Assembly (NCBI RefSeq): GCF_052425735.1
Contig: NC_135769.1
Span: 4,340,001-4,404,000, forward strand
Direction of reading: 5' to 3'
Length of the DNA: 64,000 bases
DNA from: Oculina patagonica
Lineage: Eukaryota
In this document: piece by piece, positions 4,329-61,348 of the stretch
Layout of the letters: the number at the start of each line of letters is the position of its first letter
Position numbering within the stretch: position 1 is the stretch's first letter
Notes under the pieces: model-generated
What the model was told of the DNA's origin: nothing
Databases searched by the model: none
The model's input: only the letters and a program-made list of their open reading frames with translations
Translations under genes and position numbers: made by a program

Positions 4329-5291
4329 CTATTTGCCGCATTTAAGCAGTCGTTTGGCGGCTTGTCGAAAATCCGCCCTGTAAAATGAATATATGAATGG
4401 ATTTACACACGACTGCAGAAGGAGAAAAAACATTGACAGTTTCACCAAAAGTGGTGTGACTAGGTCAGCTCGTCCAAACACATAGGCAAAGTTGTAGACG
4501 GAACGAGGTATCCATGACAACACAAATACCAAGACAACCGCAGCGCAAGCGATACTTCCTCTTCTTTTCCGTGAGGTTTCGGCTCGCGTTTCCTCGCAAG
4601 AAATTTCTTGATTTACAGAGCTAATTTCCCTCAAGGGAAACGTTTTTCGTCTCTGCGTTTGAATGGCACGAACGATCATGACGTTTACAAGAGCCATGAT
4701 CACTGCCGGTAGCATGACAAGGAGAAAAACTAAAATAACGTTGTAAACTTTGTTGATAGCTTTGGCCTTTTCCTCTGACTGAGTGTGCCACCATATGTTG
4801 CGCGCTGTCGCAATAAGGGCAGGAAAAACCCAAGTTAAGATGACCATGCAGGTCACCTTGTTCCTCGTCATTTTACTACTGTACTGTAAAGGACACAGAA
4901 CAGCCAGGTATCTGTCATACGTGATGGCCAACAAGCTGAAAAACGACGAACTGAAAACCAAGTCTTTAGTCTGTGCTAAGATCCAACACGTGTCGGAAGA
5001 GAGGTATGGCTTACACCCCGCGCAAAATGAGGTGTAACCCGGTACTACCATGACTGCCATCAAAATGTCGCTCACTGCCAAGCTGACAAGAAAAATGTTC
5101 ATGTATTGCTGTCGAAGCTGCTTTGTTGAGAGAAAGATCACACAAGTAAGCGTGTTTCCTGCCAAAATAATCAAAGCTAGGACCCCGTTGACAAACCAGA
5201 AGATTTTTTGTAATGTCTCATCACAATATGCTGTTTCGGTGCCAGTTGAGTTGGTATCCATGGAAGTGTCGTTTGACGAGAGATCCTTCAT
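4329..5291 (-). CDS. Class A orphan GPCR, cluster family member 1 (320 aa)
   Basis: Seven hydrophobic segments; GN (TM1), SLAVSD (TM2), YDRY, W4.50, SWIP, NPFIY and helix 8 FRQAA; uninterrupted ORF. Confidence 0.95.
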   Translation of the reverse strand: MKDLSSNDTSMDTNSTGTETAYCDETLQKIFWFVNGVLALIILAGNTLTCVIFLSTKQLRQQYMNIFLVSLAVSDILMAVMVVPGYTSFCAGCKPYLSSDTCWILAQTKDLVFSSSFFSLLAITYDRYLAVLCPLQYSSKMTRNKVTCMVILTWVFPALIATARNIWWHTQSEEKAKAINKVYNVILVFLLVMLPAVIMALVNVMIVRAIQTQRRKTFPLREISSVNQEISCEETRAETSRKRRGSIACAAVVLVFVLSWIPRSVYNFAYVFGRADLVTPLLVKLSMFFLLLQSCVNPFIYSFYRADFRQAAKRLLKCGK

Positions 5292-6870
5292 GTTTTATCT
5301 GGTTGAAGAGAAGCTTCCGTTGATGTAGTTTAGAAGGTTGATGTAGATATTGACCGTGACTGTGGTTCGAGCTTCTTTTATATTTTCCTTGTTGTATAAT
5401 TACCAGCTGTGTAGCCTTTGACGTTAGCGGATTTTCTTAATGGCCAATACCTGTCAAAATACATACAAATTCGGATAATTTCCCTTTATTCGGATTTTTA
5501 ATGAGATATCTACGTCGCCCTAGGGGAGCCAAATCATGGTTATTATCTCATGCACATTGTTCAATAATAAACGAGATTTTTATTCTCCTTTGTACAGAGT
5601 TGATCCTAGACGTGGCGGATCTGTGTATCCCCCCTTTTGCTATTGTTCCAAGCTGAAGTTAATCTTGTTTGTTAGGAAACCCCAGAGAATTGCTTGCCTG
5701 CGTAGGTAGTTGTTTGGCCTTCAGAAATGCGCACGCTAGCTAGCAAACTCTTTAAGGGAATTCCCTAAAAAATAGAGCAATTTTAGATTTTGTTATGGAT
5801 TTACCCAAAGAAACCATACAGACAGACCCACTGAAAAGCTCAGTAAACCACGAATTTCTTTTCGTCGTGTTGCGTGAATTCCTTTTTAGTTTGTATACCT
5901 CATGTTAAACTGACTAATTTCCCTGCTGTGTTCGGACGCCAGATTTGACTGGGCAATTCAATAACTGAAATTTATATTGGACTTTTATTTAAACGAAGGA
6001 AAAATTATTTTCTTAATATTGGTCACGCGAAAAGAACTGTTTGAAACTGATTTATAGTTATGGAAATCAGCAATCATTGTTGCGTTGAAATAAATGGCGT
6101 TCTAGAAAATACGTTTCATTGGCGCTTTTTTTTTTGTACGCTGAAAGATACAGGTTGCTTATCTTATAAGCGTCAAAAAAATCACCTACTGACTTTCCCG
6201 TAATGAGAATTAACGTCTTCATGGCATGGAACTAAATTACCAAATGAGAACCAATATATCATTCAAAACAAAGGTCAAGGATAATCTTTTTACATATTCT
6301 TGCCTGCAGGAATAAAACCTTATGGTAATTTTTGCCCCTGAAAGGTCAAAGCGGTGAAATACACTTAATCCTTTGTGATTTCTTGGCTGTAAATAGATCA
6401 TACATTTTTTGTATCTGTTTCGATACCCGTCTCATTTTGTCATTCTAGAAAAGAAACCGTTTTCGAGGGTAAACTGTCATTCAGTTTCGGCTTGTCTATT
6501 TAAAAATCGATTTCTGCTTGAAGTTCATACATAGAGATTTATTTCAGTTTTTATTATATTCTGGCCAAGAACTTCTAGAGATTTCTAGAAATTTCTAGAG
6601 CCGTGTTTTCCCATAAATATTGCTCAACATGTACAACTAAATAAAACTTCTGCTATCCAGAGAAAGCGTTTTTATTTTTAGTTTTTGACGCAAAAATAAA
6701 GATGAAAATGACAGGCTAAATTGTCCTGACAATTGTGCATTGTGGACTTTACCGTGCGTCAGATCGGAATTACGATTAATATTTACTCACAGGAAAAGAA
6801 GTCTAATTTTGGAATTCATGAACTGCATTCGATCTTTTAAGCTCTTTAACATTAACTTTGGGATATATTT

Positions 6871-6993
6871 ACTCACCTAAAATAAAGCCCGTGGGTGTTT
6901 TTGCAATTTTGAAATTCGTGTTAACGAGTTAACTCTTTGAAGTTTCTTGAAGTAGTCTCACTGACTATAACGAATCTGAGCTACTCTTTATAT
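6871..6993 (-). promoter_or_regulatory. Putative TATA + Inr core promoter and non-coding first exon of GPCR 1
   Basis: Minus strand: TATAAAG starting at 6992; TCAGT initiator with its A at 6962, 30 nt downstream; AG|GTGAGT donor at 6877/6876; candidate acceptor TTTTGACAG|G at 5451/5450. Confidence 0.55.
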
Positions 6994-8017
6994 TTTTTCG
7001 CGGTTGCTTAGGACTGAGCCAAGTCTGAGTGCAAGAAATCTACTAAAACGTCCTCTTTCCTGATGATAAAAAGGCATATTTGCTTAAGAATGATAAACAA
7101 GAACAGTTGAATAGATGGTTGACAGGAAAACGTAGCCGAAACAGGAAATTATAAACGCCGCTAATTGGACATGACGTTAGTAATGTTTTGATTTGAATCA
7201 ATGGAGGTGGCACAACTTGAAAACGGAATTTGTTGCGTGGGCTCCGGTCTTAAACATAATTTGGTTATTTAAATTAAAATATCACGTTTTCAAAGAGTTG
7301 TTTCTTAATTCTGTCACGACATTGTACAAAGCACAACAAAGAAATTGAACGCCCGATTCAGCAACTCTACGATTCAGTTCTGACGAAATTTGTCGAGTTT
7401 GGCATTAAGGTTTGAATAATTATTGTGCAGTTTTTAATATTGAAATAAAATTAAGAAACAAGGATTTCTTTTTGAACAAATAATTCTATTTTCGTTCTAA
7501 TTATACACGCTAAAAACTCCAAGGAAGCATTCTGTATGATAGCGAGATAAGTGCTTTATTTTTTTTGCCACGATAAGTTATTAAATAAAATTCTGTATTT
7601 TGAAAGCGTAAATGACGTCATTCGTTCTTTTATTAAAGTCAACTGAATGTGTGTAAGTAAGTGGAAATATTGAAAAAAGATGACAGAAACTCAACATGAA
7701 ATTGTACAATGTGCGCTTTGATGACGTCTGATGTGAAAGGTTTTTTACATTTCTAAGTATTACCTTTTATAGTACTCGATGAAAACGGGTTTATAGTTCA
7801 AATATGATTTTTAAACGTAAATAAGAATTCTCGATCGCCACAAGGTCTGAATTTAAAGCAAACGAAGCTTTCGATCCTCTATATCTCACCTTGAGACGAG
7901 AATTACTATTATTAAAATCAACCAAAGGTCAAGAATAAATATACATAGTCGTAAACTGAGGCTGTATTTTGACTCTTGCTAATTCCTAGAAAAATTATCC
8001 TTCAGATTGTTCCATGG

Positions 8018-8248
8018 CAGGGCCGTAACCAGACCTTTGCCATGGACGAGGCAAGATCTTGCTAGTGGGTTCTGGGGGCATGCCCTCCAGAAAATTTTGA
8101 AATCTAGAAGCTATAAATCTCTTTTAGAGACATTTTTCATGCAGTATTTTTTGATAAAAATCAATCTTGTTCAAATGAAGATTGATTTTTGGGTAAAAAC
8201 TTAGACGAGGCAAGTGCCTCGTCTTGCCTCTTGCTTGTTACGGCCCTT
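8018..8248. mobile_element. MITE with CAGGGCCGTAAC termini
   Basis: TIR CAGGGCCGTAAC...GTTACGGCCCTT, flanked on both sides by CATGG; the same 3' end recurs at 43761-43787. Confidence 0.7.
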
Positions 8249-8902
8249 CATGGAATTGCAATTTTTGTTTTTATTTCGATCAGTCTTTAAGCAGCTAGAC
8301 CACATTGAAATTTTGGTAGCCTTCAAATTCAAAATGTTATAAGCTGCTGATGTTAAAACAGGTCTAAAACAGGTGTTGAAACAAGTATAACACAGTAATT
8401 TTTGGCGATGACAAATTTTGGCGGGAGGAAACCTCGACAAGAAGCACGTATTCCTTATTATATTATTATATCTTATCGCTGTTTCTATTTCTGAACAACA
8501 AATATCTTAATTTTGCAGCCTTAAGTTTGGAATAGGCCTAATAATTGATGCTATTACTTTCGGCCAATGAAAAGTTGGATCACTTGGGATTGACCGACGT
8601 CACCGTCACGTGATCATCGATCTCAACTGAAGTGATTGATGTTTTCAGCAATACAATAAAACGTTTAAGCAATACTATGACGAAAACGCATCTAAAACGT
8701 CAATAAAACGACCAATCATGGCTTACGTTTTGAAAATATTACGTTAGGCTGTGATTACTTAAAAATGTTCAGAACATTTATTTCAAAACTAACATCTTCA
8801 ATGTATGTAATAAGCAGTGCGGTATTAAATAGTCACTGAAATCTGGTGAAAACGTACAATTGATGACCGTCAATAACTTCATGCGATAATACGGTATTGA
8901 AA

Positions 8903-9964
8903 ATGGAAAAAGTGTGGATTAATGACACCAAGTTGGCAAATCTCGTTGACTTTGGCGAAGATGATTCAAACACAAAGACAGATGGTCACTGCATCAGGAC
9001 AATCGAACTCGCTTTTTGGATCTTGTATTCTTTAGTCGGAATCACGATTTTTATTGGAAATAGCTTCACTTGTATCGTTTTTCTAACATCGAAACGCCTT
9101 CGAAAGAACTTTATGAATGTTTTCCTGGTCAGCTTAGCGTTCTGGGACGTCCTAATGGCGATTTTTGTTGTTCCTTTTTATGCTACATACTGTAGCCGCG
9201 GTTGCAAATATTCCCTTACTAAATACTGTTGGCTGTTTAGAAAAGCAAAAGATTGTGTTCTTATTGCGGTGACTTTTAACATCTGTGCAATCACATACGA
9301 CCGGTATTTAGCAGTGGTTCAACCGCTTCACTATGGCGCGAAAATGACCAAGCGGCGTGTCACCGCTATTTTGGCCGGAGTTTGGACGCTGCCCGCTGTG
9401 GTGGCGGGAATCAGGAGCGCTTGGCATCACACAAAGAAAAACGATGACTTGCGTTACGCCAACAAACTGTACGACACTATACTGGTGGTAGTTTTCGTCA
9501 TGTTTGCGATTTTTGTGCTGTTAGTTGTAAACGTGAAGATTATGAGAGCTATTAAGAAGCACAACGAAAGAGAACTCACTGAGCAAAGTAGAAGAACGGC
9601 TTGGAAATCCCGTATGGAGAAAACCAAGCGAAGAAAGGGCACAAGGGCCTGTATCTTAGTGGTCTTTGTTTTTATGATTTGCTGGCTTCCGAGGATTGTC
9701 TATAACTTTAGCTATATAATCAAACCTCCTGGATTAGCTAGCCCTTTGTTTCTTAGGCTTGCTTTCTTTTGCCTTTTCTTGCAGTCTTCTGCAAATCCTT
9801 TTATTTACTCATTCTACAGATCTGAGTTTAGGAGAGCGGCCTTGAGGCTTGTAAGATGGCGCAAATCCGGAAGTAGGATTTACCCATTTGCCGAATTACA
9901 ACTAAGTAAATCCAAAGAAACAAATGACCTCGCTCAATCCGAGGCTGAGTTAACGAAAATGTGA
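8903..9964 (+). CDS. Class A orphan GPCR, family member 2 (about 353 aa)
   Basis: 7TM; GN, SLAFWD, YDRY, CWLP, NPFIY. First ATG is at 8903; the track start at 8897 is TTG. Confidence 0.95.
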   Translation: MEKVWINDTKLANLVDFGEDDSNTKTDGHCIRTIELAFWILYSLVGITIFIGNSFTCIVFLTSKRLRKNFMNVFLVSLAFWDVLMAIFVVPFYATYCSRGCKYSLTKYCWLFRKAKDCVLIAVTFNICAITYDRYLAVVQPLHYGAKMTKRRVTAILAGVWTLPAVVAGIRSAWHHTKKNDDLRYANKLYDTILVVVFVMFAIFVLLVVNVKIMRAIKKHNERELTEQSRRTAWKSRMEKTKRRKGTRACILVVFVFMICWLPRIVYNFSYIIKPPGLASPLFLRLAFFCLFLQSSANPFIYSFYRSEFRRAALRLVRWRKSGSRIYPFAELQLSKSKETNDLAQSEAELTKM

Positions 9965-12117
9965 CGTTGAATTCATCGATTTAGAGAAGCGCCATAAATT
10001 TTACAGTCTGTGCTTATAGTGTTTTTTTTTTTTTCAGAAAAACAAATGTGAATTTGCAATGTAAATGTTTTGTCAAAAGGTTAACATTTAAAAGCATGCA
10101 AAATGTGACAGATATTTGTTGAAATATTTCATACAGTGAATGAATGATGTATGTATATGTCAGTAATAAATAACGGACTAATCTTTACAAAATCGCTTGC
10201 ATGTGTTGTTGTTTTAACATTTTCACAAAATTAAAGGAAGCCTCTCTTTCAGTATTTTAAAGGGGCCAACTGTCAACTAGTATACAGGGCTCCTCCGTAA
10301 AATATATATTTAATGCATTTAATGGATGGATGAAAGATTAAAAGTGATCCCCCATTTTTTTTCTCTTTTCTCTTTTGTTTTTTTGCTTTTTGGCACGGTC
10401 AACCGATGCTACCACCCTCTCCTATCTATTTTCTGTCAAAATTAGCTTTAAAATTTTCAAAGCAATGTGTTCCTTAGTCAAGTTCCCTTTTGACGAGAAT
10501 ACAAATCACCCTCGAGATATGTAAACTGAGAAGAACTCTATATATAGATTACCTGCTATTCTTAAAGAGTTTTCCAGAGAAAATGTGGATTTTTAATGTG
10601 AATGTTCTGCCAAAGAGTTAAAATTAAACAGAGCTTGCATTGCAAAACATGACAAATATTTGTCGACATGGCGGCAATCTATGAATGTTTGTACATATAT
10701 TTACAAAGAAGTAAGAAAATGATCTTGACGAAATAGCTTGTGTTCTCGTTTTAACTTTTTCGCAGAAGAAAGCCTTAATTCGTGATCAAGGGTTTTTATT
10801 AAATGTAGCCACGTATTAACTCCGTATGTTTAATTAACGGATGGGTGAAGGTGAAAAAATTCACTGAAACACAATACCTTTTTTGGCACGATCCTGGCCT
10901 GTTTGTTGCTTTTCAGAATCAACTTTAAAATTTTCACGGCAATATGCTCCTTAACCAAGTTTCTACTGGATGAGAAATAAGCTAAATGACCATCGGTGGT
11001 ATAAAGCCAATTTGCAACTGACAGGTTGACACTGATGCGAGAGAGTTCTTAACTGCGGGGGTTTTTTGTTTATCTCCTTCCCGCGCGGTCCAGATGTTGA
11101 GTGAACTAAATCGCGCAATCTGATTGGTGAATCGAACGCTCCAGGTTATTTCATCTGGACCGCTCGCTCACACAGGCTATTTTTGGGCAGCCTTTTTCCT
11201 TGTTTCTTTTTATTTTATTTTAACCACAAAATAACTCGGTCAATGCGTCCACTTTTAGACCTCACGCTCGCTCAATATCAGTCATTTTTCCCAACTGCAT
11301 AACCGGTGGTTAATGGGTTTTGGCCGGTTTTGGTTGGCATTTATTCATCCGCGAAATTAATGCCTGTTTGAAGTTTTCCGGAGCGGAAGAGAACAAAAAC
11401 AAGTAAACAAATAATGCTGTACGAGATGGCATAAATGTATCAAATAGGTTGTGCCGGCGAAGACAACTGAAAATTTTTTCAAATGCCCATTTATGAGTTC
11501 ACCAAGTGTTTTATATCTAAAACGTGATGGTTAATTTCTTACTGTGTTAAAACAGAATTGAACGAGCTTAGTCAATTTCACCTGCCATCTGTATTTACAT
11601 ACGATTATGGAAATGCCTGACTTTTGCTATGGGTATTAGTTAAGAGAAAGAAAGCTGTCAAAATATAATTTAAAAACAATATTTCTTTTTGATCACGAAA
11701 ACGTTTTAATGCACTCTATTTATTTACTCCTGGTCGGTTTTGTGGACCCGTATGTAAGATTTAACGCTTCGTTTAGCCATAGAACTTGCTGGAAGACATT
11801 ATTTTGGAGTTTGGTTGCTTTAATAAAAAGATTCAGTGCCCTATTGTTGGGTGGTTATTTGGTTTATGAATAATACAAAATTTGTCAGTATAACTAACAT
11901 GGCTCATAAAATACGTCCTAACTAGCAAAAGCTTATCTTTGCCTCAGTAAAGAAAAAATAAAGGTCCTATCTGTTAAAAATACATTAAATGATGTTTTTT
12001 GGTGTAGGCTTAAATAAAGCGTAGCTATTGCCTCGTTTATTTCATTTGAACCCTTTCAAAGGAAAAGCCGATGAAAATTAAAGTATATGATATAAGGCAG
12101 CGCAAAAAATTAAAATT

Positions 12118-13152
12118 CTATTTTTGCACAGTTTTGTACGAGGTCAGAAGAATATTTGGCTTGGCGTGGGTTTTCTCCGATCTTTCCACGGTTCCGGCAT
12201 CAGCTTGGATTTGAGCATTTTCTGAAAGAAAGGACAAAGTTCGAAGAGCCGATAACATTGACTCTGCTCTCTCGACGACAAGATGACATCTTAATAAACG
12301 ATATGCCGCTCGTCTGAACTCCGATCTGTAAAACCAATAAATCAACGGATTAACCGCGGATTGCACAAATAAAAACAGGAAGCATATTCGGAAGAACAAC
12401 GGACTTGCCAGCCCCGGGGGTTCAACAATAAAACTGAAATTGTAAACAGCGCGCGGAAGCCAGCAAATTACAAACACGAGAACTACTGTAACACATGCAA
12501 TGGTCCCTTTGCGTCCCTGAGACGACATTACCGTTACATTGTTTTGTAAGTCGCGTTTTTCTCGTTCAGCTTGTTTTCTTATCGCTCTCAAAATCTTCAA
12601 ATTTGTTCTCAGCATTAGAACAACCAGTAAAACAACAAAACCGAGCACAATTATGCTGTCGTAGAGTTTATTTGCAAAGCGAGGGTCTGCTCCACTGTGT
12701 TGCCAAAAGTTGCGAATTCCCGCCAAAATCATCGGCAAACACCACACGACAGCTAGCATGGCGGTAACTCTTTTCGAAGTTATTTTGGAGCTGTATTGAA
12801 GCGGTTTTAATACTGCAATGTAACGGTCGTAGGTGATGGCGTACAGATTTAGGGTTGTGCCGATTTTGACGCAGTCCTTCGCTCCTCTCATGAGCCAACA
12901 GTAACTACGAAAAGAGTACTCGCACCCACGGCCACAGTAAATGGCATAAAATGGAACAACGAGCACGGACATAAGTATGTCCCACACGGCGAGGCTGACG
13001 AGAAGGACATTCATCTTGCTTTGGCGAAGTTTCTCGGTGGTCAAAAACACAACACATGCGAAAAGATTACCAGTGAAGATTACAACGCCAATAACGCCGT
13101 ATAAAATGAAAAACAAGGTTTCTGTTGACGTATCGCAGGTGGTGTTTCCCAT
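12118..13152 (-). CDS. Class A orphan GPCR, family member 3 (344 aa)
   Basis: 7TM; GN, SLAVWD, YDRY, CWLP, NPLIY; most similar by eye to member 2 (shared PPGLASPL). Confidence 0.95.
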   Translation of the reverse strand: MGNTTCDTSTETLFFILYGVIGVVIFTGNLFACVVFLTTEKLRQSKMNVLLVSLAVWDILMSVLVVPFYAIYCGRGCEYSFRSYCWLMRGAKDCVKIGTTLNLYAITYDRYIAVLKPLQYSSKITSKRVTAMLAVVWCLPMILAGIRNFWQHSGADPRFANKLYDSIIVLGFVVLLVVLMLRTNLKILRAIRKQAEREKRDLQNNVTVMSSQGRKGTIACVTVVLVFVICWLPRAVYNFSFIVEPPGLASPLFFRICFLFLFVQSAVNPLIYWFYRSEFRRAAYRLLRCHLVVERAESMLSALRTLSFLSENAQIQADAGTVERSEKTHAKPNILLTSYKTVQK

Positions 13153-14593
13153 GTGTACTGTGTTGTGCCAACGCTGTTTTTTTCTCAGTTCGGTGTAATG
13201 CGGAAAATATCACAAATACGCGCGAGGTGTTGCTAAGGAGCTTGTCTTCCTTCGCCAAAAAGGTGAAGAAACTACCCGCAAAGGTCGCGCAAAACACTTG
13301 AAGGTTTTTCACCGCCTTCTTGATGTTGGATTCTGCCAAAACACACAGTAATTGTCCTACAGTTTTGAATTAATCATGTCATGTCGAACACTTCTGAGAC
13401 ATCTTCTGTTCTCACACAAAGCCAGTTTGACATTAGTACTTGTGACAAGTTTGTCACCAGCCTTCATAAATACTAAACGTACGCATTTATCAATGACAAC
13501 CTAATGGATCAAACTTACATCTTTGAAATAAAATTATAAAAATAAAAGTAACTGTGGTTTTATTCGAACAATTAATCTTCCTTTTTTCTGAGCTTAACTT
13601 TTGTAAATATAAGTCAATCGTTTGTTTAACATATGTTATCAACTGAGGACATCAAAACCAAGGATTAATAAATAGAAAATCGTTATGAGTCTCTCTACCT
13701 TTCATTAAGTTTTCATTGGCTTGTCTGTGTACACATTGCTTTCAAGTCACTTTCCTGTATTGTGAAATCATTTTATTTGACCTAAGTCCTAATATACATA
13801 TTGCCTCTTTGGAGGGACAACATTTTGCTCCGAAAAACACGCACAGTTGTGCAGGATTCTGATAAAAAATTTAGACAGGTTTTTGGAGTTCTTTGTCAAT
13901 CTAATTCATTCTAAAGGTCGTTTCAGTTCTGTTGTCGTGTAATTTTTTTACGAATAAATTGACAGCCATAAAGTGAAAAATATGAAGAAGTACGGACGGC
14001 TTGCGTCTGCAAAAAACTGAGTTATGCCACGTCTCACTCACTCTCGCATGTTCTCAGCGAAAAACAGTTGCTTTTTGTCAATATTTTGTGCATGAGGCAA
14101 GCGCTCAAACGCGCACGTTTACATAGCGGTTAGACCCATTTTGCACAAATGTAGGTTTGAGTCACGAAGTCCATAACTAATTTATCTTTTTTAAGAGACG
14201 AATATGCCCAGGTCACGTTTAGGTGGCAATTTATATAGAGAAGAATTATTAAGTGCTCATGTAACATGAATAATGACCATAGTTTATCCGACAGCTTAAT
14301 TATCCAATGTGTGATGATGCATATGCACAACTTTTATACATGCGACCTGAAAGGCAGCTGAAACATTCAAATGTTTTTTTTTTTCTGGCAAAATGTCATA
14401 TTCCTTATTCTAAAAAAACTTATTTAATCCATTGGTATCTGTTGAAGTATCTTTTCTTAAATAAAAAAGGTTAAAAATTATGATCATACTTCTTCTAAAA
14501 TTGTCTTGACGCAAGTCTGATGTATATTTCGCGGGATTTTCAATATCAGTTGTTTTTACCGACTGTATTTAGTTTCAGTTCACCTTATGTGAT

Positions 14594-16017: not shown

Positions 16018-16049
<32 letters not shown>

Positions 16050-19365: not shown

Positions 19366-19669
19366 GCAATGTCAGGCCACTATAAGTGGATTTCTAATTA
19401 ATACCAACACCTTTTGGCATTTTCAAGTACCATTAAATTATGGTGACACTGTCCCTTTATAGGTCGGTGAATCCAGAATGATTTGTGAATCAGGAAACAT
19501 TTCCTCTAGTGCAATGTCAGGCCACTATTAGTGCTTTTTTCAATTAATACCAACACGTTTATGGCATTTTCAAGTAACGCTAAATCATATGGTGACACCA
19601 CTGTCCCCGCTTTAAATGTCGGTGAATTCAGAAAGATAAATGAATCCGAAAACATTTCCTCCAGTGCAA
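19366..19669. repeat. Diverged tandem duplication (~145-158 bp x2) just 3' of GPCR 4
   Basis: GCAATGTCAGGCCACTAT...AAACATTTCCTC occurs twice head to tail. Confidence 0.8.
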
Positions 19670-19701: not shown

Positions 19702-20682
19702 TTAAATATTGAGATCATTAAGCGACGTAGTGGCGACTCTTCTAGATCCTGTAAATTTACAACAAATTAAGGCAAGCCCAGCTTGCCTGAAATCCGATCT
19801 GCAAAACGAATAAATAAACGGGTTGGCAGAAGATTGCATAAATAGCAACAACCATGCAATCTTCACTAAAACATCACTGACTAAATCAGGCCTGCCGAGC
19901 ACGAAACTAAAATTGACAAAAGCTAATGGCAGCCAGCTAACGAGAAAAACGAACACGACTAAAACGCACGATATTGTTCCCTTCCTGGCTTTTGTTCTTT
20001 CAAATCTAGTGTCCTGTTCTGTTCTCGCTTCGCTCACGCTATTTCTTTCTTGGCGCACACGTTGATTTTGCCGTCGTATCGCTTTGATTATCTTTACATT
20101 AATCACAAGAATGACAAGAATAGGCAACAAGGCAAAGGCGAAGATCAATGTACTGTTGTAAATCTTGTCTATTTTTCGCGCCTCCTCTTCGGACTCTGTG
20201 TGAAGCCATACGTTACGTAAAAGAGCAACAATAGAACTTAAAACCCAGACCCCAACCAAAATAAAGCTGACGGTTCTCTTTGTCATATAGTTGTGGTAGT
20301 GTAAAGGACGTAGCACCGCCAGGAATCTGTCAAAAGATATCGCAGCTAAATTAAACACTGTTCCTCCAAAGGCAATGTCTTTTAGTCCAGCCATCAACCA
20401 GCAGTGCTTGGACAGATCATATTTGCAGCCGTTACAGAAAACGGCATATCCAGGAACAACAAAAACCGCCATCATAATATCAGCTACTGCCAAGCTAACT
20501 AAGAAAATGTTCATGTAGCTTCGTCGAAGCCTTTTCGTTGTGACGAAGACCAGGAAAGTAAAGAGGTTTCCCGCCAATATAACAATGCCCGCGCTGCCAT
20601 ACAGAATCCAGAAAACCATTTCCAAAGTCTCGTTGCAGAGAGGGGTGATTTGAGTTGGTTTACTAGTTTTAACCGCTTCCAT
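19702..20682 (-). CDS. Class A orphan GPCR, family member 4 (about 326 aa)
   Basis: 7TM; GN, SLAVAD, FDRF, SWLP, NPFIY. First ATG is at 20682 (MEAVK). Confidence 0.95.
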   Translation of the reverse strand: MEAVKTSKPTQITPLCNETLEMVFWILYGSAGIVILAGNLFTFLVFVTTKRLRRSYMNIFLVSLAVADIMMAVFVVPGYAVFCNGCKYDLSKHCWLMAGLKDIAFGGTVFNLAAISFDRFLAVLRPLHYHNYMTKRTVSFILVGVWVLSSIVALLRNVWLHTESEEEARKIDKIYNSTLIFAFALLPILVILVINVKIIKAIRRQNQRVRQERNSVSEARTEQDTRFERTKARKGTISCVLVVFVFLVSWLPLAFVNFSFVLGRPDLVSDVLVKIAWLLLFMQSSANPFIYSFCRSDFRQAGLALICCKFTGSRRVATTSLNDLNI

Positions 20683-36188: not shown

Positions 36189-36465
36189 TTCGGACAGCCC
36201 GAAATATGTGGTTTTACGTGGGAGAGTAATCAAGATGTCCACTGAAACCATGTGGAGCAGCAGGACAGGTTTAAAGAACCGGTGGAAGTGGCACCAGGAG
36301 GGGAGCACCGCAACGTTAGGGTAAGAAATAACCCTAGGGGGAGTTCGCCAATGAGAGGCTGTGGAAGAAAAACACCTGCCATCAACTATTCCCATGGTAA
36401 ACGTCTAAGGTCTACGCAAATTTTCCGGAACTGGGCACGCTCAGCGTTGGGGTTGCGTTTCTCAT

Positions 36466-47854: not shown

Positions 47855-48802
47855 TTAGAATCTATTACATGACAGCAATTTAACAGCAGCACGTCGGAGG
47901 TCAGCTCTGTAAAACGAATAGATAAGTGGGTTAACAGATGACTGCACGATGAAGAGAAATATCGACATCTTCTGCAGTAGTATATTAACCCGTCCTCCGC
48001 TTATCAGATACTGGACGTTGAATGAGACTCGTGGAATCCACGACACCACAAACACTATCACAACAAGGGCGCAAGCCAATGTCCCCTTTCGTGTTCGAGC
48101 AACTTCTGCTTGAGTCTCTGGGTTTACAGCTTCGTCTGCCGCATTCTGAGGATGTCCGAGGGCGAAGACCTGACGCACCTGCTGTCGGATGGTCAATATG
48201 ATCTTGATATTTACCACAGAAATTATCGTGGATGGTATCAGGAGAACTACCAGCAGAAGTATGTTATTGTACAGGCCATTAAGCGCGATTAATTCAGCTC
48301 CAGTTGTTGTGTGTTGCCAAAAATTGCGGATTGAAGCGATGGTTAAGGACGCGCTCCAGACCATGATCATGATAAAGAAAGCTCTACGTCTAGTCATTAC
48401 GTCGGAGTAACGAAGGGGTCTGTAGACTGCCAAAGCGCGATCATAAGAAATTGTAAGCAAATTGTAGATACTCGAAGCGAGAGCGATGTCTTTCGAACCT
48501 TTGAAGAACCAACAGTGCTTGCTTAGCGCGTACTCGAAACAGCCAACGCAGAACAGCGAATAACCCGGAACGACGCACGAAGCCATTATGATGTCGGTGA
48601 CAGCCAGCGACGCGATAAATAGGTTCATCGGTTGCTGTCGAAGTCGGGGACTCGTTGCTATGGACAGGAACACCAGAACGTTGCCAAGGAGGATGACGGC
48701 GCCTACGGTAAGGTTGAGAACCATGAATGTTGTCTCGATGGACTGATCGCAGGATGAGGGTTCGGTTATGTTTGTTGCCGGTACTGAATTGCTCGTTGAC
48801 AT
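47855..48802 (-). CDS. Class A orphan GPCR, family member 7 (315 aa)
   Basis: 7TM; GN, SLAVTD, YDRA, SWIP, NPLIY. Confidence 0.95.
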   Translation of the reverse strand: MSTSNSVPATNITEPSSCDQSIETTFMVLNLTVGAVILLGNVLVFLSIATSPRLRQQPMNLFIASLAVTDIIMASCVVPGYSLFCVGCFEYALSKHCWFFKGSKDIALASSIYNLLTISYDRALAVYRPLRYSDVMTRRRAFFIMIMVWSASLTIASIRNFWQHTTTGAELIALNGLYNNILLLVVLLIPSTIISVVNIKIILTIRQQVRQVFALGHPQNAADEAVNPETQAEVARTRKGTLACALVVIVFVVSWIPRVSFNVQYLISGGRVNILLQKMSIFLFIVQSSVNPLIYSFYRADLRRAAVKLLSCNRF

Positions 48803-54587: not shown

Positions 54588-55634
54588 ATGAATTCCTCGA
54601 TTTCGGGCTTGGCTCCAGAAAACTTTACTTTAATACCAGGCCAAACTTTGCAGCCGCAAAATGAATCTGATTACAAGACATCATATTGCGACCATCGACT
54701 TGATGTGGTGTTTTGGGTGGTCAATGGCATAATCGGTGTGGTTATCTTACTAGGGAACAGTTTTACATGCGCTGTATTCTTATCCAACTCTTACTTGAGA
54801 CGGAATTACATGAATATCTATCTGATAAGCCTTTCTATGGCCGATATTTCAATGGCAGTGTTAGTGGTGCCGGGTTTTGCCGCATTTTGTAGTGGTTGCA
54901 CTTATAAATGGAGCGAGTACTGCTGGTTTTTCGGAGGCGCGCGAGACATTGCGTTTCCTGCTACCGTCCTCAATCTACTGGCCATCACCTATGATAGATA
55001 CACAGCCGTTATAAGACCGTTGCATTACGCAGCGACGATGACAAATCGCAAGGTTTTCACCATTCTTCTAGCTGTCTGGTTGACACCGCTAATCGTTTCG
55101 TCCCTGAGAAATATTTGGCATCATTCGTGGAGCGAAGAAGCGGTCAAAAACGCTGAAACAGTTTACAACGCAGTACTGGCTACAATGTTTGCGTTGTCGC
55201 CACTCCCTGTGTTGCTAATAGTGAACCTTAAGATTATGAGAGCTATAAAGAACCATGGACAGCGAATTCACGCAGATATGGTAGAGCGAATGTCTTTCAC
55301 GAATCACACGGACAGAGGATTTTCCACCCGGCAAATCGATAAAGAATTCGGCAGTAGTGCTGCAATAAACGAACAAAATCGCAGAAATACTTCACGAAGG
55401 AGAAAAGGAACCATGTCCTGTGTTTTTGTTGTTTTGATTTTTATTATTTCTTGGCTTCCGAGAGCTTATCTGAATTTGTGCAGCCTTTTCGGCCGACAAG
55501 ACTTAACGAGCCCATTGCTCGTAAAACTTTCTTTGTTTTTTCTCTTTTTCCAGTCTTCGGTCAACCCTGTAATTTATTCTTTTTTTAGAAATGATTTTCG
55601 CCAAGCGGCCCGCCGATTAATTAAACGGCACTAA
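54588..55634 (+). CDS. Class A orphan GPCR, family member 8 (348 aa)
   Basis: 7TM; GN, SLSMAD, YDRY, SWLP, NPVIY; longest ICL3. Confidence 0.95.
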   Translation: MNSSISGLAPENFTLIPGQTLQPQNESDYKTSYCDHRLDVVFWVVNGIIGVVILLGNSFTCAVFLSNSYLRRNYMNIYLISLSMADISMAVLVVPGFAAFCSGCTYKWSEYCWFFGGARDIAFPATVLNLLAITYDRYTAVIRPLHYAATMTNRKVFTILLAVWLTPLIVSSLRNIWHHSWSEEAVKNAETVYNAVLATMFALSPLPVLLIVNLKIMRAIKNHGQRIHADMVERMSFTNHTDRGFSTRQIDKEFGSSAAINEQNRRNTSRRRKGTMSCVFVVLIFIISWLPRAYLNLCSLFGRQDLTSPLLVKLSLFFLFFQSSVNPVIYSFFRNDFRQAARRLIKRH

Positions 55635-55789
55635 CTGGGCAAATCTGCAATATGCCCGGCGAAAGTTTAAAGTAAATTCAGCTAAGATCTGACAGATCGG
55701 TGCGAAAAAGCTCTTTTCCGTAAACTCATTGAAGATACGTTTCTGGTTGGTACAGAAAGTGTGAAAGCACTCAGTCAAAATTAACTAAA

Positions 55790-57810
55790 GTAAGGACTAG
55801 AGGGCTAATTAGGGACGCGCCAAAGATGGGGAGCCGATTCTCTACAGCAAACACCATCAGAGTGATGTGGATGACGCCTCTGAGAGACCCCCCAGTGGCA
55901 CAGGTGCCCCGCCACCAGAACAGATCCCCCCCGACTGGGAGAATCCACCCCGGAGCGCAGGTGGGGCCAGTGCGAGGCCCACCCAGGAGCCCCCGCAGCC
56001 CCAGCTCCCGCCCACCCGACACCCGAGAGGGGGGGGGGGGGGAGCCCCCCCCCGCCAGCCCCGGGCCCGGAGCGTCAAATAATTTCGCTCGCTTTTACGA
56101 ACTCCGGGGAGGGGCTCCTCCTCCACCCCCCCTTGTACGATGTGGGGTGTGATTGCTTGTACGTCCGAGTAGTTAGATACCGCAGTCCGTGCTTTTTGTC
56201 GTGCTTTTTGTTTTTTGGTTCTTGCGGTCGTTGGGTTTTCTTCTGCTTTTTCTTTTCTTTTTCTTGTTTTCTTGTTAGTGGCGGTCTGGGTAGTTCAGTC
56301 CTGTTGTGCAGTATGAGCTCTGTGCCTAGTCAGCGACTGCGCTTTCCTTCCCGTTTCCTTTCCGCTGTTTTGAGCGCCTTTCAGTTGTCTCTTTAGTCGA
56401 CATAAGGGGTCTTTGATTGTGAGAGCGTTTCAGTGTCTCGTGCGGAGTAGTGCTTACACTCTTTTTCTCTTTCGAGGTCTTGTGACTTTTTCATTTTGCG
56501 AGTTTTATTTCTGTTTGTCTTTTTTTCCCGATATACTATTTAGATCTGATGCCACCTTTGTATGATTTTCTCTTTTTTGATTCTTTTCCCTCGTTTTTTT
56601 TTCCCGTATTGTGAGGGCGTGTTCTCCTCTGTTTCGGGTTCCTTCCCTGCGCGAGGTCCCGCGTTTGTTCTATTATTTTTTGTTTAATTCTTTTGTTTTT
56701 TATTTTTCATTTTAGATGTGTGCTTTGTTCTTTTTGTTTTCTTGAGTTGATTTCCGAGGCTCAGCGGTGTCGCTAGTGTCTTGCGTCTGCTCGCGTCCTT
56801 CTTTTCGGCGCGGCGGAGGGCCTCGGGTGCCGGAGTGTGCGTTTGTTTTCTTTTTTTTGCTGTCGTCTGTGTGGCGGTTCAGCTGCTTGTTGTCGTGTCT
56901 TTTTCTTTCGTGGCGCGGTGCGGCTCGCTAGTGCCTGTGATGCGGTGTGCCGCCGGCTTTGCCTTGTTTTTTTTAGGATCGTTCGGGGGTGTGTGTTTTC
57001 TTCTTTTTCCTGAAGCTTTTTAGCCCCGTTAGTGCCCGGGTCCTCTGCGTTCGCCCATCTTTGTGTTTTTTCTTTTTTTTTTTTTTTGTTCAGTACAGTT
57101 CCCCCCTCCAACACATCTTCTCTTCTCCAGTGCCCATTTTGGTAGCTCTTTCTTTTGCTATTCTTTGTGCTTTGAATTAGATGTGTTGGTTCTGTTGTAG
57201 TCCTATTCAGAAGCGTTGTAGATTCTCATCGTTCTTAAGATTGCTAGGTGCTTTTTTTCTCTTTTCTTGTGTCTCTGTTTGTTGTTGTGTTTTGTTAGAG
57301 GAGCTTGCGGTGGTGGTGTTTGTTTTGGTGGTCGCATCGCATGCAGTCGCTTTTTTTTTTGTGTTCTGAGTCCTGTCTCTGGTGTCAGTGATTGAGAGCT
57401 CCCTAGTGTGACGCGCCGCTGCCTAGTGTGTAGCACTTCTCTTTTGCTCTCGTGGTGGTGCTTTGAGTGTTGTGGTGGTCGTCTCGACTGTTTGCTCTGA
57501 CCGCTTTTTCTGTGAATCGGTCGTGCTGATGGGACTGTCTTTGGGCCCCAGTAGGGGGGGGGGGTGGTGGAGCCTGGGGGGTAGCGGAGCCTAGCGTTGA
57601 GTTGTGTGACGGAGCGTCTGATCGCGTAGCAGGGAATCTTTGGTTGTCAGGTGTCTTTGTGCTCCCCCCCTTACTGAGAAGTGATAGTTTTATTGTAGTG
57701 CGGGCTAGAGGTGATATTGTGTTTGTTCGCTGCTCTTAGTTCTGTTTGTTGGGGTTTGTTGTCTGTCTGGGTTGCCCCCTTCTGGGTCTTTTGTCTGTTT
57801 CTCTGACAAT
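55790..57810 (-). mobile_element. Extremely degenerate LINE (RTE-like) remnant or low-accuracy sequence
   Basis: Sharp A depletion on the plus strand and many homopolymers. Minus-strand translations weakly echo the RTE endonuclease (GGTVL..K..W ~ GGTLF.HK..TW) and the RTE C-terminal W.GH...GKR.RGRP region. Confidence 0.4.
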
Positions 57811-58136
57811 GACACTTAAAGCAAAAATAAATGGCTTGTTCTTGAACGTTTAAAAAATGGTTTAATGTTGTTCTTTGCTGCCTTTAAGTAGTACACCAGA
57901 CGAATTGCCCACAAAAATTTAAAATAGAATCAACAAAATACTAAACGACAGAAAATCCTAAAAGCAATTTTATTAACCATATCATTCGAGAACGTGTTTA
58001 CGTGGGAGCAGGTGAAATATTTGACGACCCTATTTATGTATCTCTAGGCTGCACATTCTTAAATATTTTTCCAAAATATCCAAAACAATACCAACCAGAC
58101 CAAAGTGGCTCAGAGACTCAAAATCAGGGGGCTGCA

Positions 58137-58239
58137 TAACCTGCGATCAGGCGTTCTTTTTTTTCGCGGCTGAAGGAAAGAGAAAAAAGGAACTTATTTT
58201 TCCTCCCGCTGCAAAATAAGAATGCCTGATCGCAGGTTA
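58137..58239. mobile_element. 103-bp MITE, 22-bp TIR, 9-bp TSD
   Basis: GGGGCTGCA|TAACCTGCGATCAGGC...GCCTGATCGCAGGTTA|GGGGCTGCA. Confidence 0.9.
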
Positions 58240-60358
58240 GGGGCTGCATTAAACCAATTACTGGAGAAATAGTTACAAAGCAATTGGTGATTTTCAAAAG
58301 TCTTCTCCGGGGAAACTTGGTGGGTCTTCGATTATTCCAGCTACTATTATCTGCTGCGTTTAATAACTTTAACCACCATTCGGATATCATCATGAAAAAA
58401 TATATATCAATTTTTAATTACACTTGTTTTCATTTGTTTATATACTGTTCTTATTATGCGTTTTAAAGTGCCGATCTCTGGAAAGAGTTAATCACTTAAA
58501 TGGGAGTTTCATATTAGATTTCTGTTTTCAAAATATAAGGCGTTTACGCAGCTCTGACGGACTAGAGAGCCCAAAGAAGATATCCATTGAATGCTTAGTG
58601 TTTTTTGTAAATGCAGCTTTGCGATTATTTCTCTGGCCTGTATTCAGTTTGTCTTTTGTTGTCAGATTATCCTTAAACAGAATCGGCCTATCAGGCGAGT
58701 TTGTTCGAGCTATGGTTCGTATTTGGCGAAAAGCAGTCAATCAAAAATACCCATGGCGGGACCAAACGAGCCTGATTTGCCGCCGAGGCGAAATACGATT
58801 GGGTATTTGCCGTTCCCAAGTTCAGCTTAACCTCAGCAAAGGACTTGATATATATCGCAGGAAATCGATCAGGACAGTATACAAGGCTTCCGATTGGCTT
58901 ATTGCGACTTTAGGCACGATAACAGGCTCACGTTTAATTTGGGTCACATTCACGAGCCTTTTCGCTCGCGGACTCAAGCCCGCGGCCTTGCGATCGCGAG
59001 AGTGACCCAAATGTGGCTGCTAGAACTAAAGAGAACTGAAGATAGTAATTCCCCTCTTACTCTATAAAAAGGAGAATTATTTCACTGTCAAGACTGTCAA
59101 TAGAATTAAGTTGCAAGAATCATGAACCGTGGCCGTGGCTTGTATGACGCAGCGTTTCGTCCCAGCCAAGGGACTTTTCAGATACTTAGCTTTCCTGAAG
59201 GAGTCAAGGTTGACTAGGCGCAACAAATGCTATTTTTTTTCTCCTAATCCCTCGATCCGCAACTATTTTCGTTTAATCCGAATGCGCATTACTTGAAAGT
59301 TCCTGTTGTATAGTTTCACTGCAACGACTGTAGTTGTTAATTTTTTTAAACCGATTGTTTAAGAAGTTTCCTATTATCGATCGCTATTTTATATGAATGT
59401 TAAGTTACAGAATTATGTTAAACATTAATATAATCCCTAAACGAAGTTCCCATGATCCGAACCTCAGGCAGACAGAGCCTGGAATCCAGGCCAAATTTCT
59501 CAGCTGATCTTGGTTACGCCGTACGACGGTAGTTTCGAAATCCACGAATCCGCTCAATTTATGTCAAAGGTCCGCATCCCTGCGCGTTTTAATGCCAAAT
59601 TTGTCCATCCGCGAACCTATTCATCCCCCCCCCCCCCCCTTGAAGAGACGTCCCTTTGCCGAGAGGAGACGCAGCGAAACACTAGCCATGATTTACGAAT
59701 TCGCTTATATTTAATTTGGTCCGTTTCGTGTTGTTGTTCAGGACTGAAGTGCTCCAAATACCAGGCACGGGATATCAACTCTAACCCAGTCCCTACTTAT
59801 TACAAATAAGTCGAGAAGGCATGGGCCTTGAAGGATGATCAAGGGCGCGTGTAGTCTTGGGAGGAATGATTACTGGTTTGCAATAAACTCGCGCTTTAAC
59901 AGAAAGCGATCTACAAAACACGTGGTGCGAATTTATACGCGTGTACGCGTGTGCACGTGGCACGATTTTATACACCTGTTCGGACAGACCTAAGCAAGTT
60001 TTTTATAAGTTTGTAAAAAAACGGAAGTTTCGAAATTAAAACTGCGCCGTGTCAAATCAATCATTTGTTAAAGCTTCAGCGCCTTTGAGAATAAGCCAAC
60101 CATTTAATTTACTTCTCACCCGTAATGCATCTGTTATTTACACTGGCAACACTAAACGTGACTTAAAACAACTGCTGAAAAAATAACATCGAGCTCCTAA
60201 GTGCTTTAATTAGGCAGCTTTATCCGCTGCAATATAACTTTTCCTGCAAATTGATTTAGTACATGCAAGGTAAATTAAATGAATCGTACTCTAGGCAGTC
60301 AGTTTTGTTTAAGCTAGCTCACAGTACGTGCAGAATTTGGATCTTTGTAAGCTCAGCT

Positions 60359-61348
60359 ATGTCGAACATTTCTCAGTTAAATAATTCAAATCGTATGCTA
60401 TCTAGCCCTCCAAAACTTCCCGTCTTCCAACCCGATGTTGATGAAATTAACGACGATGAAAACTGCAGCAGAGAGCTGGATTTTCTCTTCTGGATTATAA
60501 ACGGCGTCATCGGAGCTTTCATTCTGCTGGGAAACACTCTAACATGTGCAGCTTTTCTACGCTTTGAGAATCTCCGACGTAGCTGCATGAATGTTCTTTT
60601 GCTCAGCCTGGCCATTTGTGATGTTCTTATGGGGGTGACAGTAACGCCTGGCTACGCTGCATTCTGCACTGGCTGCACATACGGCTTCAGTAAGCTCTGC
60701 TGGCTTTTCGAAGGCGGGAAAGATGTCTGCTTTCTGAACTCCACGTTTAATCTTCTAGCGATCTCCTATGACAGGCAGCTAGCCATTTTTCAGCCGCTGA
60801 AATATCAGGCCAAGATGTCGCGAAGGAAAATTCGCTGGATTTTGACCGCAGTTTGGATCGTGCCTGTGTGTCTTGCCGCTGTAAGAAACATTTGGTCTCA
60901 CAACCAACCGGCGAATGTCGTCGAAGAGTGGAACAGGACCTATTCATACATTTTACTGTGTGTTTTTGTGATAGTCCCCATTATCACTGTCAGCGTTATC
61001 AATGTCGCAATTTTCTGCGCCATTAGAAAACAAAGACGAAAAATAACAGGTTTCGACTACAACAATTATAAATACTGGTGGAAAAAGAAGAATCGTATGC
61101 AATATATTCAACTGCGAAAGGGCACGCTTTCATGCGTTTTAGTAGTTATCGCATTTGTAGTTTGCTGGCTTCCTAGAGCTTTTTATTACTTCTTTTATTT
61201 GTTCGGCCGTCCCGAGTTAGTTACGCCGTTTCTGCGTAAAATTTCGGTGACTTTTCTGCTGTTTCAATCTTCGACAAATCCTTTTATTTACTCTTTTTAC
61301 AGAAGGGAGTTCCGACAAGCTGTCAGAATTTTAATTAAATGTCAGTAG
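60359..61348 (+). CDS. Class A orphan GPCR, family member 9 (329 aa from 60359; in-frame upstream ATG at 60263)
   Basis: 7TM; GN, SLAICD, YDRQ, CWLP, NPFIY; start codon ambiguous. Confidence 0.93.
   Translation: MSNISQLNNSNRMLSSPPKLPVFQPDVDEINDDENCSRELDFLFWIINGVIGAFILLGNTLTCAAFLRFENLRRSCMNVLLLSLAICDVLMGVTVTPGYAAFCTGCTYGFSKLCWLFEGGKDVCFLNSTFNLLAISYDRQLAIFQPLKYQAKMSRRKIRWILTAVWIVPVCLAAVRNIWSHNQPANVVEEWNRTYSYILLCVFVIVPIITVSVINVAIFCAIRKQRRKITGFDYNNYKYWWKKKNRMQYIQLRKGTLSCVLVVIAFVVCWLPRAFYYFFYLFGRPELVTPFLRKISVTFLLFQSSTNPFIYSFYRREFRQAVRILIKCQ

Follow-up and report, generated by a model that had tools for sequence, protein, structure and literature searches.

A stretch of 64,000 nucleotides of the genome of the coral Oculina patagonica (RefSeq assembly GCF_052425735.1, contig NC_135769.1, positions 4,340,001 to 4,404,000 of the forward strand; the window, in what follows) carries, between its positions 4329 and 61348, nine intact single-exon open reading frames (ORFs) for G protein-coupled receptors (GPCRs) that fall into class A and belong to one family, as established by an ORF listing and by tblastn onto the window. 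They are best explained as an old, syntenically conserved tandem array that encodes nine long-lived receptor subtypes of a single hexacoral orphan family, which would belong to the alpha (monoamine/adenosine-related) branch of the rhodopsin-like receptors and would respond to ligands other than amines. The probability that we attach to this explanation as a whole is about 0.7. What is new here is an uncharacterised hexacoral subfamily, unusual both in its residue signature and in the stability of its array.

The nine genes are designated G1 to G6 and G8 to G10 in their order along the window. All nine products match the Pfam class A family 7tm_1 (PF00001) over its full length (profile positions 1-260), with E values of 1e-32 to 1e-41 and scores of 112-142 bits against a gathering cut-off of 30.5. 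Pairwise identity among the paralogs is 30-53% (mean 41%), both strands are used, and the spacers in the array measure 2.2-7.9 kb. An initial annotation of the window, made from its letters alone, had described nine uninterrupted, strongly diverged paralogous receptors lying in mixed orientation within 57 kb with no recognisable non-GPCR gene among them. All of this stands, the last point as far as tested: the ten longest non-GPCR ORFs of the window are without a Pfam match, although a multi-exon gene with short exons could escape such a search. Self-comparison of the window reveals no nucleotide-level repeats or recent gene conversion linking the nine genes, and tblastn finds no pseudogene of the nine-member family in the window.

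The family is sharply bounded. In a search of 1.84 billion representative proteins with a profile built from the nine, scores of 300-450 bits go to about 27 full-length clusters (at 50% identity), and the rest score 188 bits or less; the best-scoring outsiders are D1-type dopamine receptors of arthropods, a histamine H2 receptor from a gecko, a protein of Actinia named 'octopamine beta-1R-like' and one from a scyphozoan. The homologs come from the corals Stylophora, Porites, Orbicella, Pocillopora and Montipora and from the anemones Nematostella, Actinia and Actinostola. Against ten outgroups (H2, D1/DopR1, 5-HT1 and A2b-type receptors) the family is monophyletic with 100% SH-aLRT support and does not nest in the bilaterian monoamine receptor clade, on a tree that comes from a fast search with limited outgroup sampling and whose deep in-family branches are poorly resolved. 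Its nearest relatives, the monoamine, histamine H2 and adenosine receptors, are only ~24% identical to it; H2, D2, beta1 and D1 receptors head a sequence profile search of the PDB (E 1e-42 to 1e-44). The prediction that the family would fall outside the characterised receptor clades is thus borne out by both the tree and the score gap. Five motifs had also been put forward as private to it (L.R..MN..L.SL, RN.W.H, RKGT..C, QSS.NP and YSFYR..FR). They are indeed rare elsewhere (among the 95 GPCRs closest to the family but outside it, 0-2 contain each), but as a consensus they are not invariant, the literal patterns being present in 5, 7, 6, 7 and 4 of the nine proteins.

The automatic names of family members are 'adenosine receptor A2a', 'adenosine receptor A2a-like', 'tyramine receptor Ser-2-like', 'D(1)-like dopamine receptor', 'D(1) dopamine receptor-like' and 'melanopsin-like', as well as 'hypothetical protein'. 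The initial annotation had foreseen that pipelines would mislabel these receptors as aminergic or adenosine-like, and so they do; because one family receives six different names, the names carry no information. An opsin identity, as the 'melanopsin-like' label would have it, was considered and rejected: position 7.43 (in the residue numbering used below) is Phe, Leu, Tyr or Ile, with no Lys among the commonest residues listed. A full-text literature search with six member accession numbers matched no paper, and the Pocillopora receptome paper has no content specific to the family, which is an orphan, hexacoral-specific and uncharacterised subfamily of class A receptors.

A large cnidarian-specific clade, sister or close to the canonical monoamine receptors and of undetermined function, was described by Goulty et al. 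2023, with the adenosine receptors sister to the wider group (PMC10244343). By its sequence the present family very probably lies in that clade: among the outsiders, D1-type dopamine receptors, H2 receptors and 'octopamine beta-like' receptors stand nearest to it, and a published sequence file tags its Nematostella member EDO36056 'MAR'. The clade of Goulty et al. is large and is described on a tree only, whereas the family would form a sharply bounded subset of it, with its own residue signature and a conserved array.

Other corals have, for every paralog of the window, a separate and well-supported group of orthologs, with identities of 54-91%. For G1 the orthologs are 91% (P0038), 87.5% (on the ENA coral contig L003) and 80% (Stylophora, L001) identical; for G2, 65-90%, including the Stylophora 'tyramine receptor Ser-2-like' at 72%; for G3, 79-80% (L003 and L009, best value 80%); for G4, with about 28 orthologs, 60-90%; and for G5, 71-86%. 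G6 has an ortholog at 88% in L009 and groups on the tree with proteins of 451-785 residues that have a long third intracellular loop (ICL3). The orthologs of G8 are less similar (64% for P0071 and 54% in Stylophora, with a further Pocillopora damicornis group, P0133), those of G9 are 74-90% identical, and those of G10, which are 317-330 residues long and 69-90% identical, comprise an Orbicella 'D(1)-like dopamine receptor' group, the Stylophora 'melanopsin-like' protein and Montipora sequences.

The order and orientation of the array are likewise conserved in three other coral assemblies, Stylophora included. Contig L003 carries G1(-), G2(+), G3(-) and G4(-), at 87.5%, 84%, 79% and 78% identity and with a spacing near that of the window. 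On the 1.51-Mb contig ERZ25067872 the genes G6, G5, G4 and G3, together with the first part of G2, have the order and relative orientation of the window, and G9 and G10 lie 36 kb away, as against 40 kb in the window. In Stylophora (LSMT01000149.1) G1(-) at 80%, G2(+) at 71% and G3(-) at 62% occupy 463-477 kb, and G8(-) at 54%, G9(+) and G10(+) at 74% occupy 502-512 kb, followed by a bromodomain gene. The non-coding Stylophora flank that adjoins the 3' end of this bromodomain (KIAA2026-like) gene bordering the array (L007 15500-17300) aligns to positions 62200-64000 of the window in short blocks of 64-80% identity, with stops in all frames. Because the Stylophora flank beyond G10 finds its counterpart at 62.2-64.0 kb, the array of the window, too, probably ends on its right side with G10. 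The Stylophora array has ORFs of the retrotransposon family RVT_1 within it (L001 14409-17978), and so does that of another coral (L008 7033-8679).

The family is not confined to corals. Nematostella has at least four family members, one of which stands alone; on DS469680.1 a G10-like gene is accompanied, 5.5 kb downstream, by a G6-like gene of 510 residues (L006 16557-18089) whose best match is G6 and which has a long ICL3 insertion. Further Nematostella members are present in the published sequence file of Thiel et al., and on the tree the ortholog group of the anemones falls within the family. The ortholog groups, the conserved order and the Nematostella pair together indicate that several of the duplications are older than the split of the sampled coral genera, and that at least one tandem pair is older than the split of anemones and corals.

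The ratio of nonsynonymous to synonymous divergence (dN/dS) between orthologs is about 0.09-0.19 at dS 0.45-1.25 (two methods, eight pairs, G1-G5 only). By gene, the values are 0.09-0.13 for G1, 0.13-0.17 for G2, 0.14-0.16 for G3, 0.14-0.20 for G4 and 0.14-0.19 for G5; these five genes are under purifying selection. The initial annotation had taken the cluster for a lineage-expanded, birth-and-death array of the kind formed by odorant receptors (ORs) or trace amine-associated receptors (TAARs), and it is on this point that it fails. Lineage-specific gain and loss, pseudogenes within the array and relaxed or diversifying selection, which would characterise such an array, were not found, apart from the fragmented look of the G3 and G9 orthologs in Stylophora; what was found is one-to-one orthology, conserved order, low dN/dS and a tandem pair in Nematostella. 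A recent, species-specific expansion is rejected on the grounds of synteny and orthology.

Evidence of transcription was read from contigs assembled from sequencing runs and placed on positions 8500-14400. Run X1 (316 million letters) is of the same species, with five contigs at least 99% identical to the window; X2 and X4 are from a related organism, and X14 is a DNA-like run. X1 contigs cover 8797-9947 (G2 with ~106 nt of 5' untranslated region, UTR) and 12104-13484 (G3 with ~330 nt of 5' UTR), X2 and X4 cover G2 to ~10163 and G3 over 11750-13657, and the G2 and G3 contigs of the three runs are without splice joints. The genes, each a single ORF, are intronless and clustered, as had been claimed. 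X1 also contains 93% of the sampled G4 words and 35% of the words of 4329-13152, which is the coding share of that stretch. In the DNA between G2 and G3 the depth of X1, X2 and X4 is zero, except over a short piece at ~10872-11257; X14, in contrast, covers 8500-14400 evenly at ~35x. G2, G3 and G4 are transcribed, at low depth; with the intergenic stretches silent as an internal control, the G2 and G3 signal is taken as transcription rather than DNA contamination. G1 is probably transcribed also, because of the share of words that X1 holds over 4329-13152. As to the intergenic piece, 111 nt of it (10872-10982) are present at depth 26 in a 1465-nt X1 contig that runs on into unrelated sequence. 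Because the X2 contig over ~10872-11257 does likewise, the piece is probably an expressed repeat, separate from the G2 and G3 transcripts.

An AlphaFold2 model of G4 (pLDDT 79.6, pTM 0.78) has the standard bundle of seven transmembrane helices (TM1-TM7) and helix 8, with a second extracellular loop (ECL2) that is very short and mostly helical. Foldseek matches it in the PDB to beta1-adrenergic, adenosine A1/A2A, melatonin MT2 and histamine H2 receptors (TM-scores of 0.7-0.76 at ~24% identity), and among Swiss-Prot models to D1-type dopamine, beta3-adrenergic and adenosine A1/A3 receptors (TM-scores of 0.7-0.8 overall). For comparison residue by residue, 103 family sequences were tabulated against aminergic and adenosine references; residues are numbered from conserved anchors, with the register of TM3 set by an ungapped alignment, from C3.25 to the DRY motif, with the histamine H2 receptor. 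N1.50, D2.50, D3.49-R3.50, W4.50, W6.48, P6.50, N7.49, P7.50 and Y7.53 are kept in 101-103 of the 103 sequences and in all nine genes of the window, and F6.44 is also kept in the family. Because the class A switches are retained to this degree, the nine receptors would be expected to act as ordinary ligand-activated, G-protein-coupled receptors.

Other residues of the activation machinery differ. Position 5.58 is Asn in all 103 sequences where the references have Tyr, 7.45 is Gln in all 103 where the references have Asn, and 6.30 is not the Glu of the references; the invariant N5.58 and Q7.45 may mean an altered basal activity or G-protein coupling. ECL2 is without Cys in all nine proteins, and the C3.25-ECL2 disulfide that is typical of the class is accordingly absent, as is Tyr5.58. 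Neither feature is strictly defining, and because of this class A membership stands. The cysteines that are conserved lie ahead of TM1 (97 of 103), in a CxGC motif in the first extracellular loop, ECL1 (103 and 97 of 103), and at 3.25 (102 of 103). Their placement suggests a disulfide knot of N-terminus, ECL1 and TM3 that replaces the canonical TM3-ECL2 bridge.

The ligand pocket departs from those of the nearest relatives as well. At 3.32, which is Asp in all aligned aminergic references, the family has Lys (83 of 103), Arg (19) or Ala (1), so that the amine counter-ion of monoamine receptors is missing; the neighbouring 3.33 is Asp in 88 of 103 (Val, Phe or Leu in the references). In TM5 the mostly polar residues of the aminergic references (Ser, Thr or Asp) give way to Leu at 5.42, Ile or Val at 5.43 and Phe at 5.46. 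Position 6.51 is Arg in 73 of 103 and Leu in the G4 group (Tyr, Leu or Phe in the references), 6.52 is Ala or Ile, and the aromatic 6.51/6.52 pair of monoamine receptors is absent. In TM7, 7.36 is Lys or Arg in 95 of 103 (the references vary), 7.40 is Phe or Leu as against Trp in H2 and 5-HT1 receptors, 7.42 is Leu as against Ser in the A2b-type reference, and 7.43 is Phe (77 of 103), Leu (16), Tyr (5) or Ile (3) as against His in the A2b-type reference and Tyr in aminergic receptors. N6.55, present in 91 of 103, varies among the references and is shared with the A2b-type one. The family has in common with the H2, D1-like and beta-adrenergic receptors, its best sequence and fold matches, the DRY, CWxP and NPxxY motifs and C3.25; it is set apart from them by K/R3.32, N5.58 and Q7.45 and by the lack of the TM5 serines, W7.40, Y7.43, E6.30 and a Cys in ECL2. 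With adenosine receptors, whose ECL2 cysteines tie that loop to ECL1 and TM3, it shares N6.55, a similar length, a short ICL3 and TM-scores of ~0.7-0.8. Of the adenosine-receptor combination of N6.55, S7.42/H7.43 and a disulfide-tied ECL2 only the first is present, however: the family has L7.42/F7.43, charged residues at 3.32/3.33 in place of Val/Leu, and a short, Cys-free ECL2.

With D3.32, the TM5 serines, W7.40 and Y7.43 missing, the ligand would not be a classical monoamine; with S7.42/H7.43 missing and ECL2 different, it would not be adenosine. With K/R3.32, D3.33, R6.51 (replaced by Leu in the G4 group), N6.55 and K/R7.36 in the pocket, a polar ligand would be expected, probably an anionic or zwitterionic one. 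The pocket positions 3.29, 3.37, 3.40, 5.36, 6.57 and 7.39 are constant within ortholog groups and differ between them; 3.29, 3.37, 5.36, 6.57 and 7.39, being fixed within subtypes and different between them, suggest that each subtype is tuned to a different but conserved ligand or ligand variant. So stable a set of subtypes would fit endogenous (paracrine or metabolite) signals or fixed ecological cues better than an open-ended odorant repertoire. The sphingosine-1-phosphate and lysophosphatidic acid (S1P/LPA) receptors and the cannabinoid receptors also have no TM3-ECL2 disulfide, and they have an adjacent basic/acidic pair in TM3 and a basic residue near 7.34-7.36 for a charged head group. 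The Cys-free ECL2, the K/R3.32-D3.33 pair and K/R7.36 of the family recall them, as a lead only: the pair of the family lies one helical turn deeper (3.32/3.33 rather than 3.28/3.29), C3.25 is kept, and there are no lipid receptors among the best sequence or fold matches.

The alternative that survives best, although we consider it unlikely, is that the array encodes environmental chemoreceptors, expressed in sensory cells of larvae or polyps and responding, in the manner of TAARs, to cues in the surrounding water, among them settlement inducers and prey or symbiont metabolites. TAARs stem from the monoamine branch, are single-exon genes in one tandem cluster of ~6-15, and have conserved subtypes with orthologs across species, so that the present array resembles theirs in both architecture and conservation. 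Most TAARs keep D3.32, whereas the family has Lys or Arg, and since the family is hexacoral-specific the relation is not one of orthology. The TAAR signature in TM7, NSxxNPxx[YH]xxx[YF]xWF, occurs in 0 of the nine proteins, which read QSSxNPFIYSFYRxxFR instead, and the OR motifs MAYDRY and KAxxTxxxH (KAxxTC..H) also occur in 0 of nine. Membership of either receptor type, and with it the OR/TAAR likeness first proposed, is rejected on these motifs, and the absence of family pseudogenes from the window tells against the likeness as well. Subtype-specific residues in a charged, polar pocket would suit a set of water-soluble cues, and the low depth in bulk RNA is what would be expected of genes expressed in few cells. 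The nine proteins do give weak secondary matches to the Pfam family 7tm_4 and to nematode chemoreceptor families, but the 7tm_4 scores (21-46 bits) lie far below those for 7tm_1. An anthozoan parallel is the set of single-exon, tandem, rhodopsin-like 'OR-like' genes of Nematostella that Churcher and Taylor 2011 proposed as chemoreceptor candidates (PMC3017388). The family shares these features but not their motif, L..P.Y.L...L...D........P: its segment from the first intracellular loop to TM2 reads LRRSYMNIFLVSLAVAD, with no Pro or Tyr there and one extra residue (aligned by eye). Rhodopsin-like GPCRs are also the most frequent tandemly amplified families in corals, according to Noel et al. 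2023, and mostly in a genus-specific way (PMC10236652); the present array is the opposite, conserved case. It is this conservation, with one-to-one orthology, order and orientation kept across genera, an anemone tandem pair, low dN/dS and no species-specific expansion, that weighs against a chemoreceptor array and for long-lived subtypes.

A tentative idea, which we hold to be rather improbable as it stands, carries the preferred explanation further. A hexacoral-specific signalling system would have grown from a proto-monoamine receptor and changed its ligand class, with K/R3.32-D3.33, R6.51, N6.55 and K/R7.36 lining the pocket, a cysteine-knotted N-terminus/ECL1 lid replacing the ECL2 disulfide, and nine subtypes each tuned to one anionic or zwitterionic small molecule; amino acids, betaines, osmolytes of the dimethylsulfoniopropionate (DMSP) type and phospholipid head groups would be the candidate ligands. 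Molecules of this kind matter for exchange between coral and symbiont or coral and microbe.

It is improbable that the nine belong to the peptidergic system of cnidarians, which expanded independently, and serve as receptors for neuropeptides. Cnidarians do use many class A peptide receptors without bilaterian orthologs (PMC11087051), and nine conserved subtypes would suit an endogenous set of peptides. Thiel et al. 2024 tested peptides on 161 GPCRs of Nematostella (PMC11087051); family members are in their catalogue but not among the tested receptors, and family-specific words (WILDGIIAIV, YSFYR, CWLPR, WLPRA and others) are absent from the tested-receptor list, which includes protein sequences, so that on this count peptides stay in play. 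Sequence and fold, however, place the family with the small-molecule (monoamine/adenosine/melatonin) receptors and not with the peptide-receptor cluster. In the file of Thiel et al. the peptide-receptor candidates are tagged 'NPR', whereas EDO36056 is tagged 'MAR' and EDO36054 is untagged; and a short, helical ECL2 with a short N-terminus is unlike most peptide receptors.

Least credible of all is that these are genuine monoamine or adenosine receptors, as their names say, through which dopamine, adrenaline or serotonin would exert their reported effects on the larvae of corals. The closest structures and profile matches are indeed receptors of the H2, D1/D2, beta-adrenergic and adenosine types; the family has kept N6.55, a residue of both adenosine and beta-adrenergic receptors; and Goulty et al. 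2023 speculate that their cnidarian clade may mediate cnidarian monoamine responses (PMC10244343). Against this, the charge at 3.32 is reversed in 102 of 103 sequences, 5.42, 5.43 and 5.46 are hydrophobic, W7.40, Y7.43, the aromatic 6.51/6.52 pair and S7.42/H7.43 are absent, ECL2 is short and Cys-free, the family stands outside these clades on the tree at ~24% identity, and its six names contradict one another.

Several observations weigh against the reading of the array as nine old subtypes with non-amine ligands. Residue diversity between ortholog groups is only modestly higher in the extracellular than in the intracellular halves (3.62 vs 3.09 residue types, p = 0.015). N5.58 with the missing E6.30 is unusual, and activation could be atypical or constitutive; D3.33, beside the basic residue at 3.32, could pair with a cationic group, and the ligand could then contain an amine. 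There has been some turnover: in Stylophora the orthologs of G3 and G9 can be aligned only piecewise and are not called as full genes (the fragments, at L001 19080-20382 and L007 5858-6856, may reflect pseudogenisation or assembly error), and at least three further ortholog groups are without a representative in the window. Expression is read from contigs built by an assembler, out of runs that are guessed to be RNA, at word depths of 3-14, and function from residues and evolutionary pattern.

Individual members of the array have features of their own. G1 (4329-5291, minus strand, 320 residues, 7tm_1 E 1.9e-37) lies head-to-head with G2 (8903-9964, plus strand, 353 residues from the first ATG, E 1.4e-36), whose nearest paralog, at 53%, is G3 (12118-13152, minus, 344 residues, E 4.3e-35). 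G4 (19702-20682, minus, 326 residues from the first ATG) has the strongest 7tm_1 match, E 4e-41, and it is its ortholog group that has Leu instead of Arg at 6.51; G5 (23600-24637, minus, 345 residues, E 6.5e-34) has Gly instead of Asp at 3.33. G6 (28613-29707, plus, 364 residues from the first ATG, E 3.9e-32), the most divergent member at 30-39% identity to the other paralogs, has a longer ECL1. G8 (47855-48802, minus, 315 residues, E 1.6e-33) has the top secondary 7tm_4 score, 45.9 bits, and G9 (54588-55634, plus, 348 residues, E 1.9e-33) has Arg at 3.32 and the longest ICL3 of the nine. The last gene of the array, G10 (60263-61348, plus, E 4.1e-32), has Tyr at 6.55 and an ORF of 361 codons. 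Because its orthologs align from Met33, and have the length given above, translation probably starts at Met33 (position 60359), for a protein of 329 residues, and the first 32 codons (60263-60358) are probably 5' UTR.

The window as a whole is AT-rich (GC 0.36-0.50) and free of N. From the ORF listing and from tblastn of the products onto it come ten GPCR ORFs of full length and a single broken copy, the tenth being G7 (41104-42099, plus strand), which stands between G6 and G8 and is uninterrupted but degenerate and unrelated to the family: it is 19% identical to G1, matches 7tm_1 at E 5e-14 only, and in place of DRY, CWxP and NPxxY reads SISQY, SALPH and DAFIY. A broken partial copy of G7 lies inverted relative to it at ~32228-33213 (minus strand), its ORF split and its middle missing. 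In tblastn it matches residues 1-98 of G7 at 92%, after which the frame breaks, and it shares a 337-nt inverted repeat (92%) with 41061-41397; its tail (…VEPRRQSKEIKLQEM) and 3' flank resemble the end of G6, and in L009 it is the G6 ortholog, at its 3' end and flank, to which the 3' part can be aligned. Beside and downstream of this copy are 9/19-bp microsatellite arrays of the ATCTTTTGG type, at 31692-32188 and 36463-36960, which are reverse complements of each other.

Other repeats are a GC-rich minisatellite at 44226-45659 with ~103 copies of a 14-bp unit (TGTCATGGCACGCG) at 92% match, self-complementary and the source of several spurious ORFs of 170-285 residues in all frames, and 155-bp tandem repeats at 37502-38499 and 19366-19669. 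The spacer between G9 and G10, over 55700-59000, has GC 0.45, an AT skew of -0.26 and overlapping low-complexity ORFs of 139-195 residues without a Pfam match. An Rfam scan of the window yields nothing but a single weak tRNA-like match at 36107-36184 (minus strand; 30.3 bits against a cut-off of 29). About 185 nt around it recur three times in Stylophora loci (L001 3829-4015 and 19515-19703; L007 11383-11552), and because of this recurrence the element looks like a tRNA-derived short interspersed element common to corals.

Corals have hundreds of orphan GPCRs, almost none of them with a ligand. A fixed set of nine subtypes, its order kept across genera and part of it inherited from the common ancestor of anemones and corals, implies nine separate, long-maintained functions. 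The residue signature (basic 3.32, N5.58, Cys-free ECL2) is a reason to distrust the database names and to demote the classical amines as ligands, and the family bears on the diversification of the monoamine branch before and outside the Bilateria. Its members, intronless, of ~330 residues and with Nematostella orthologs, form a small and tractable set for deorphanisation.

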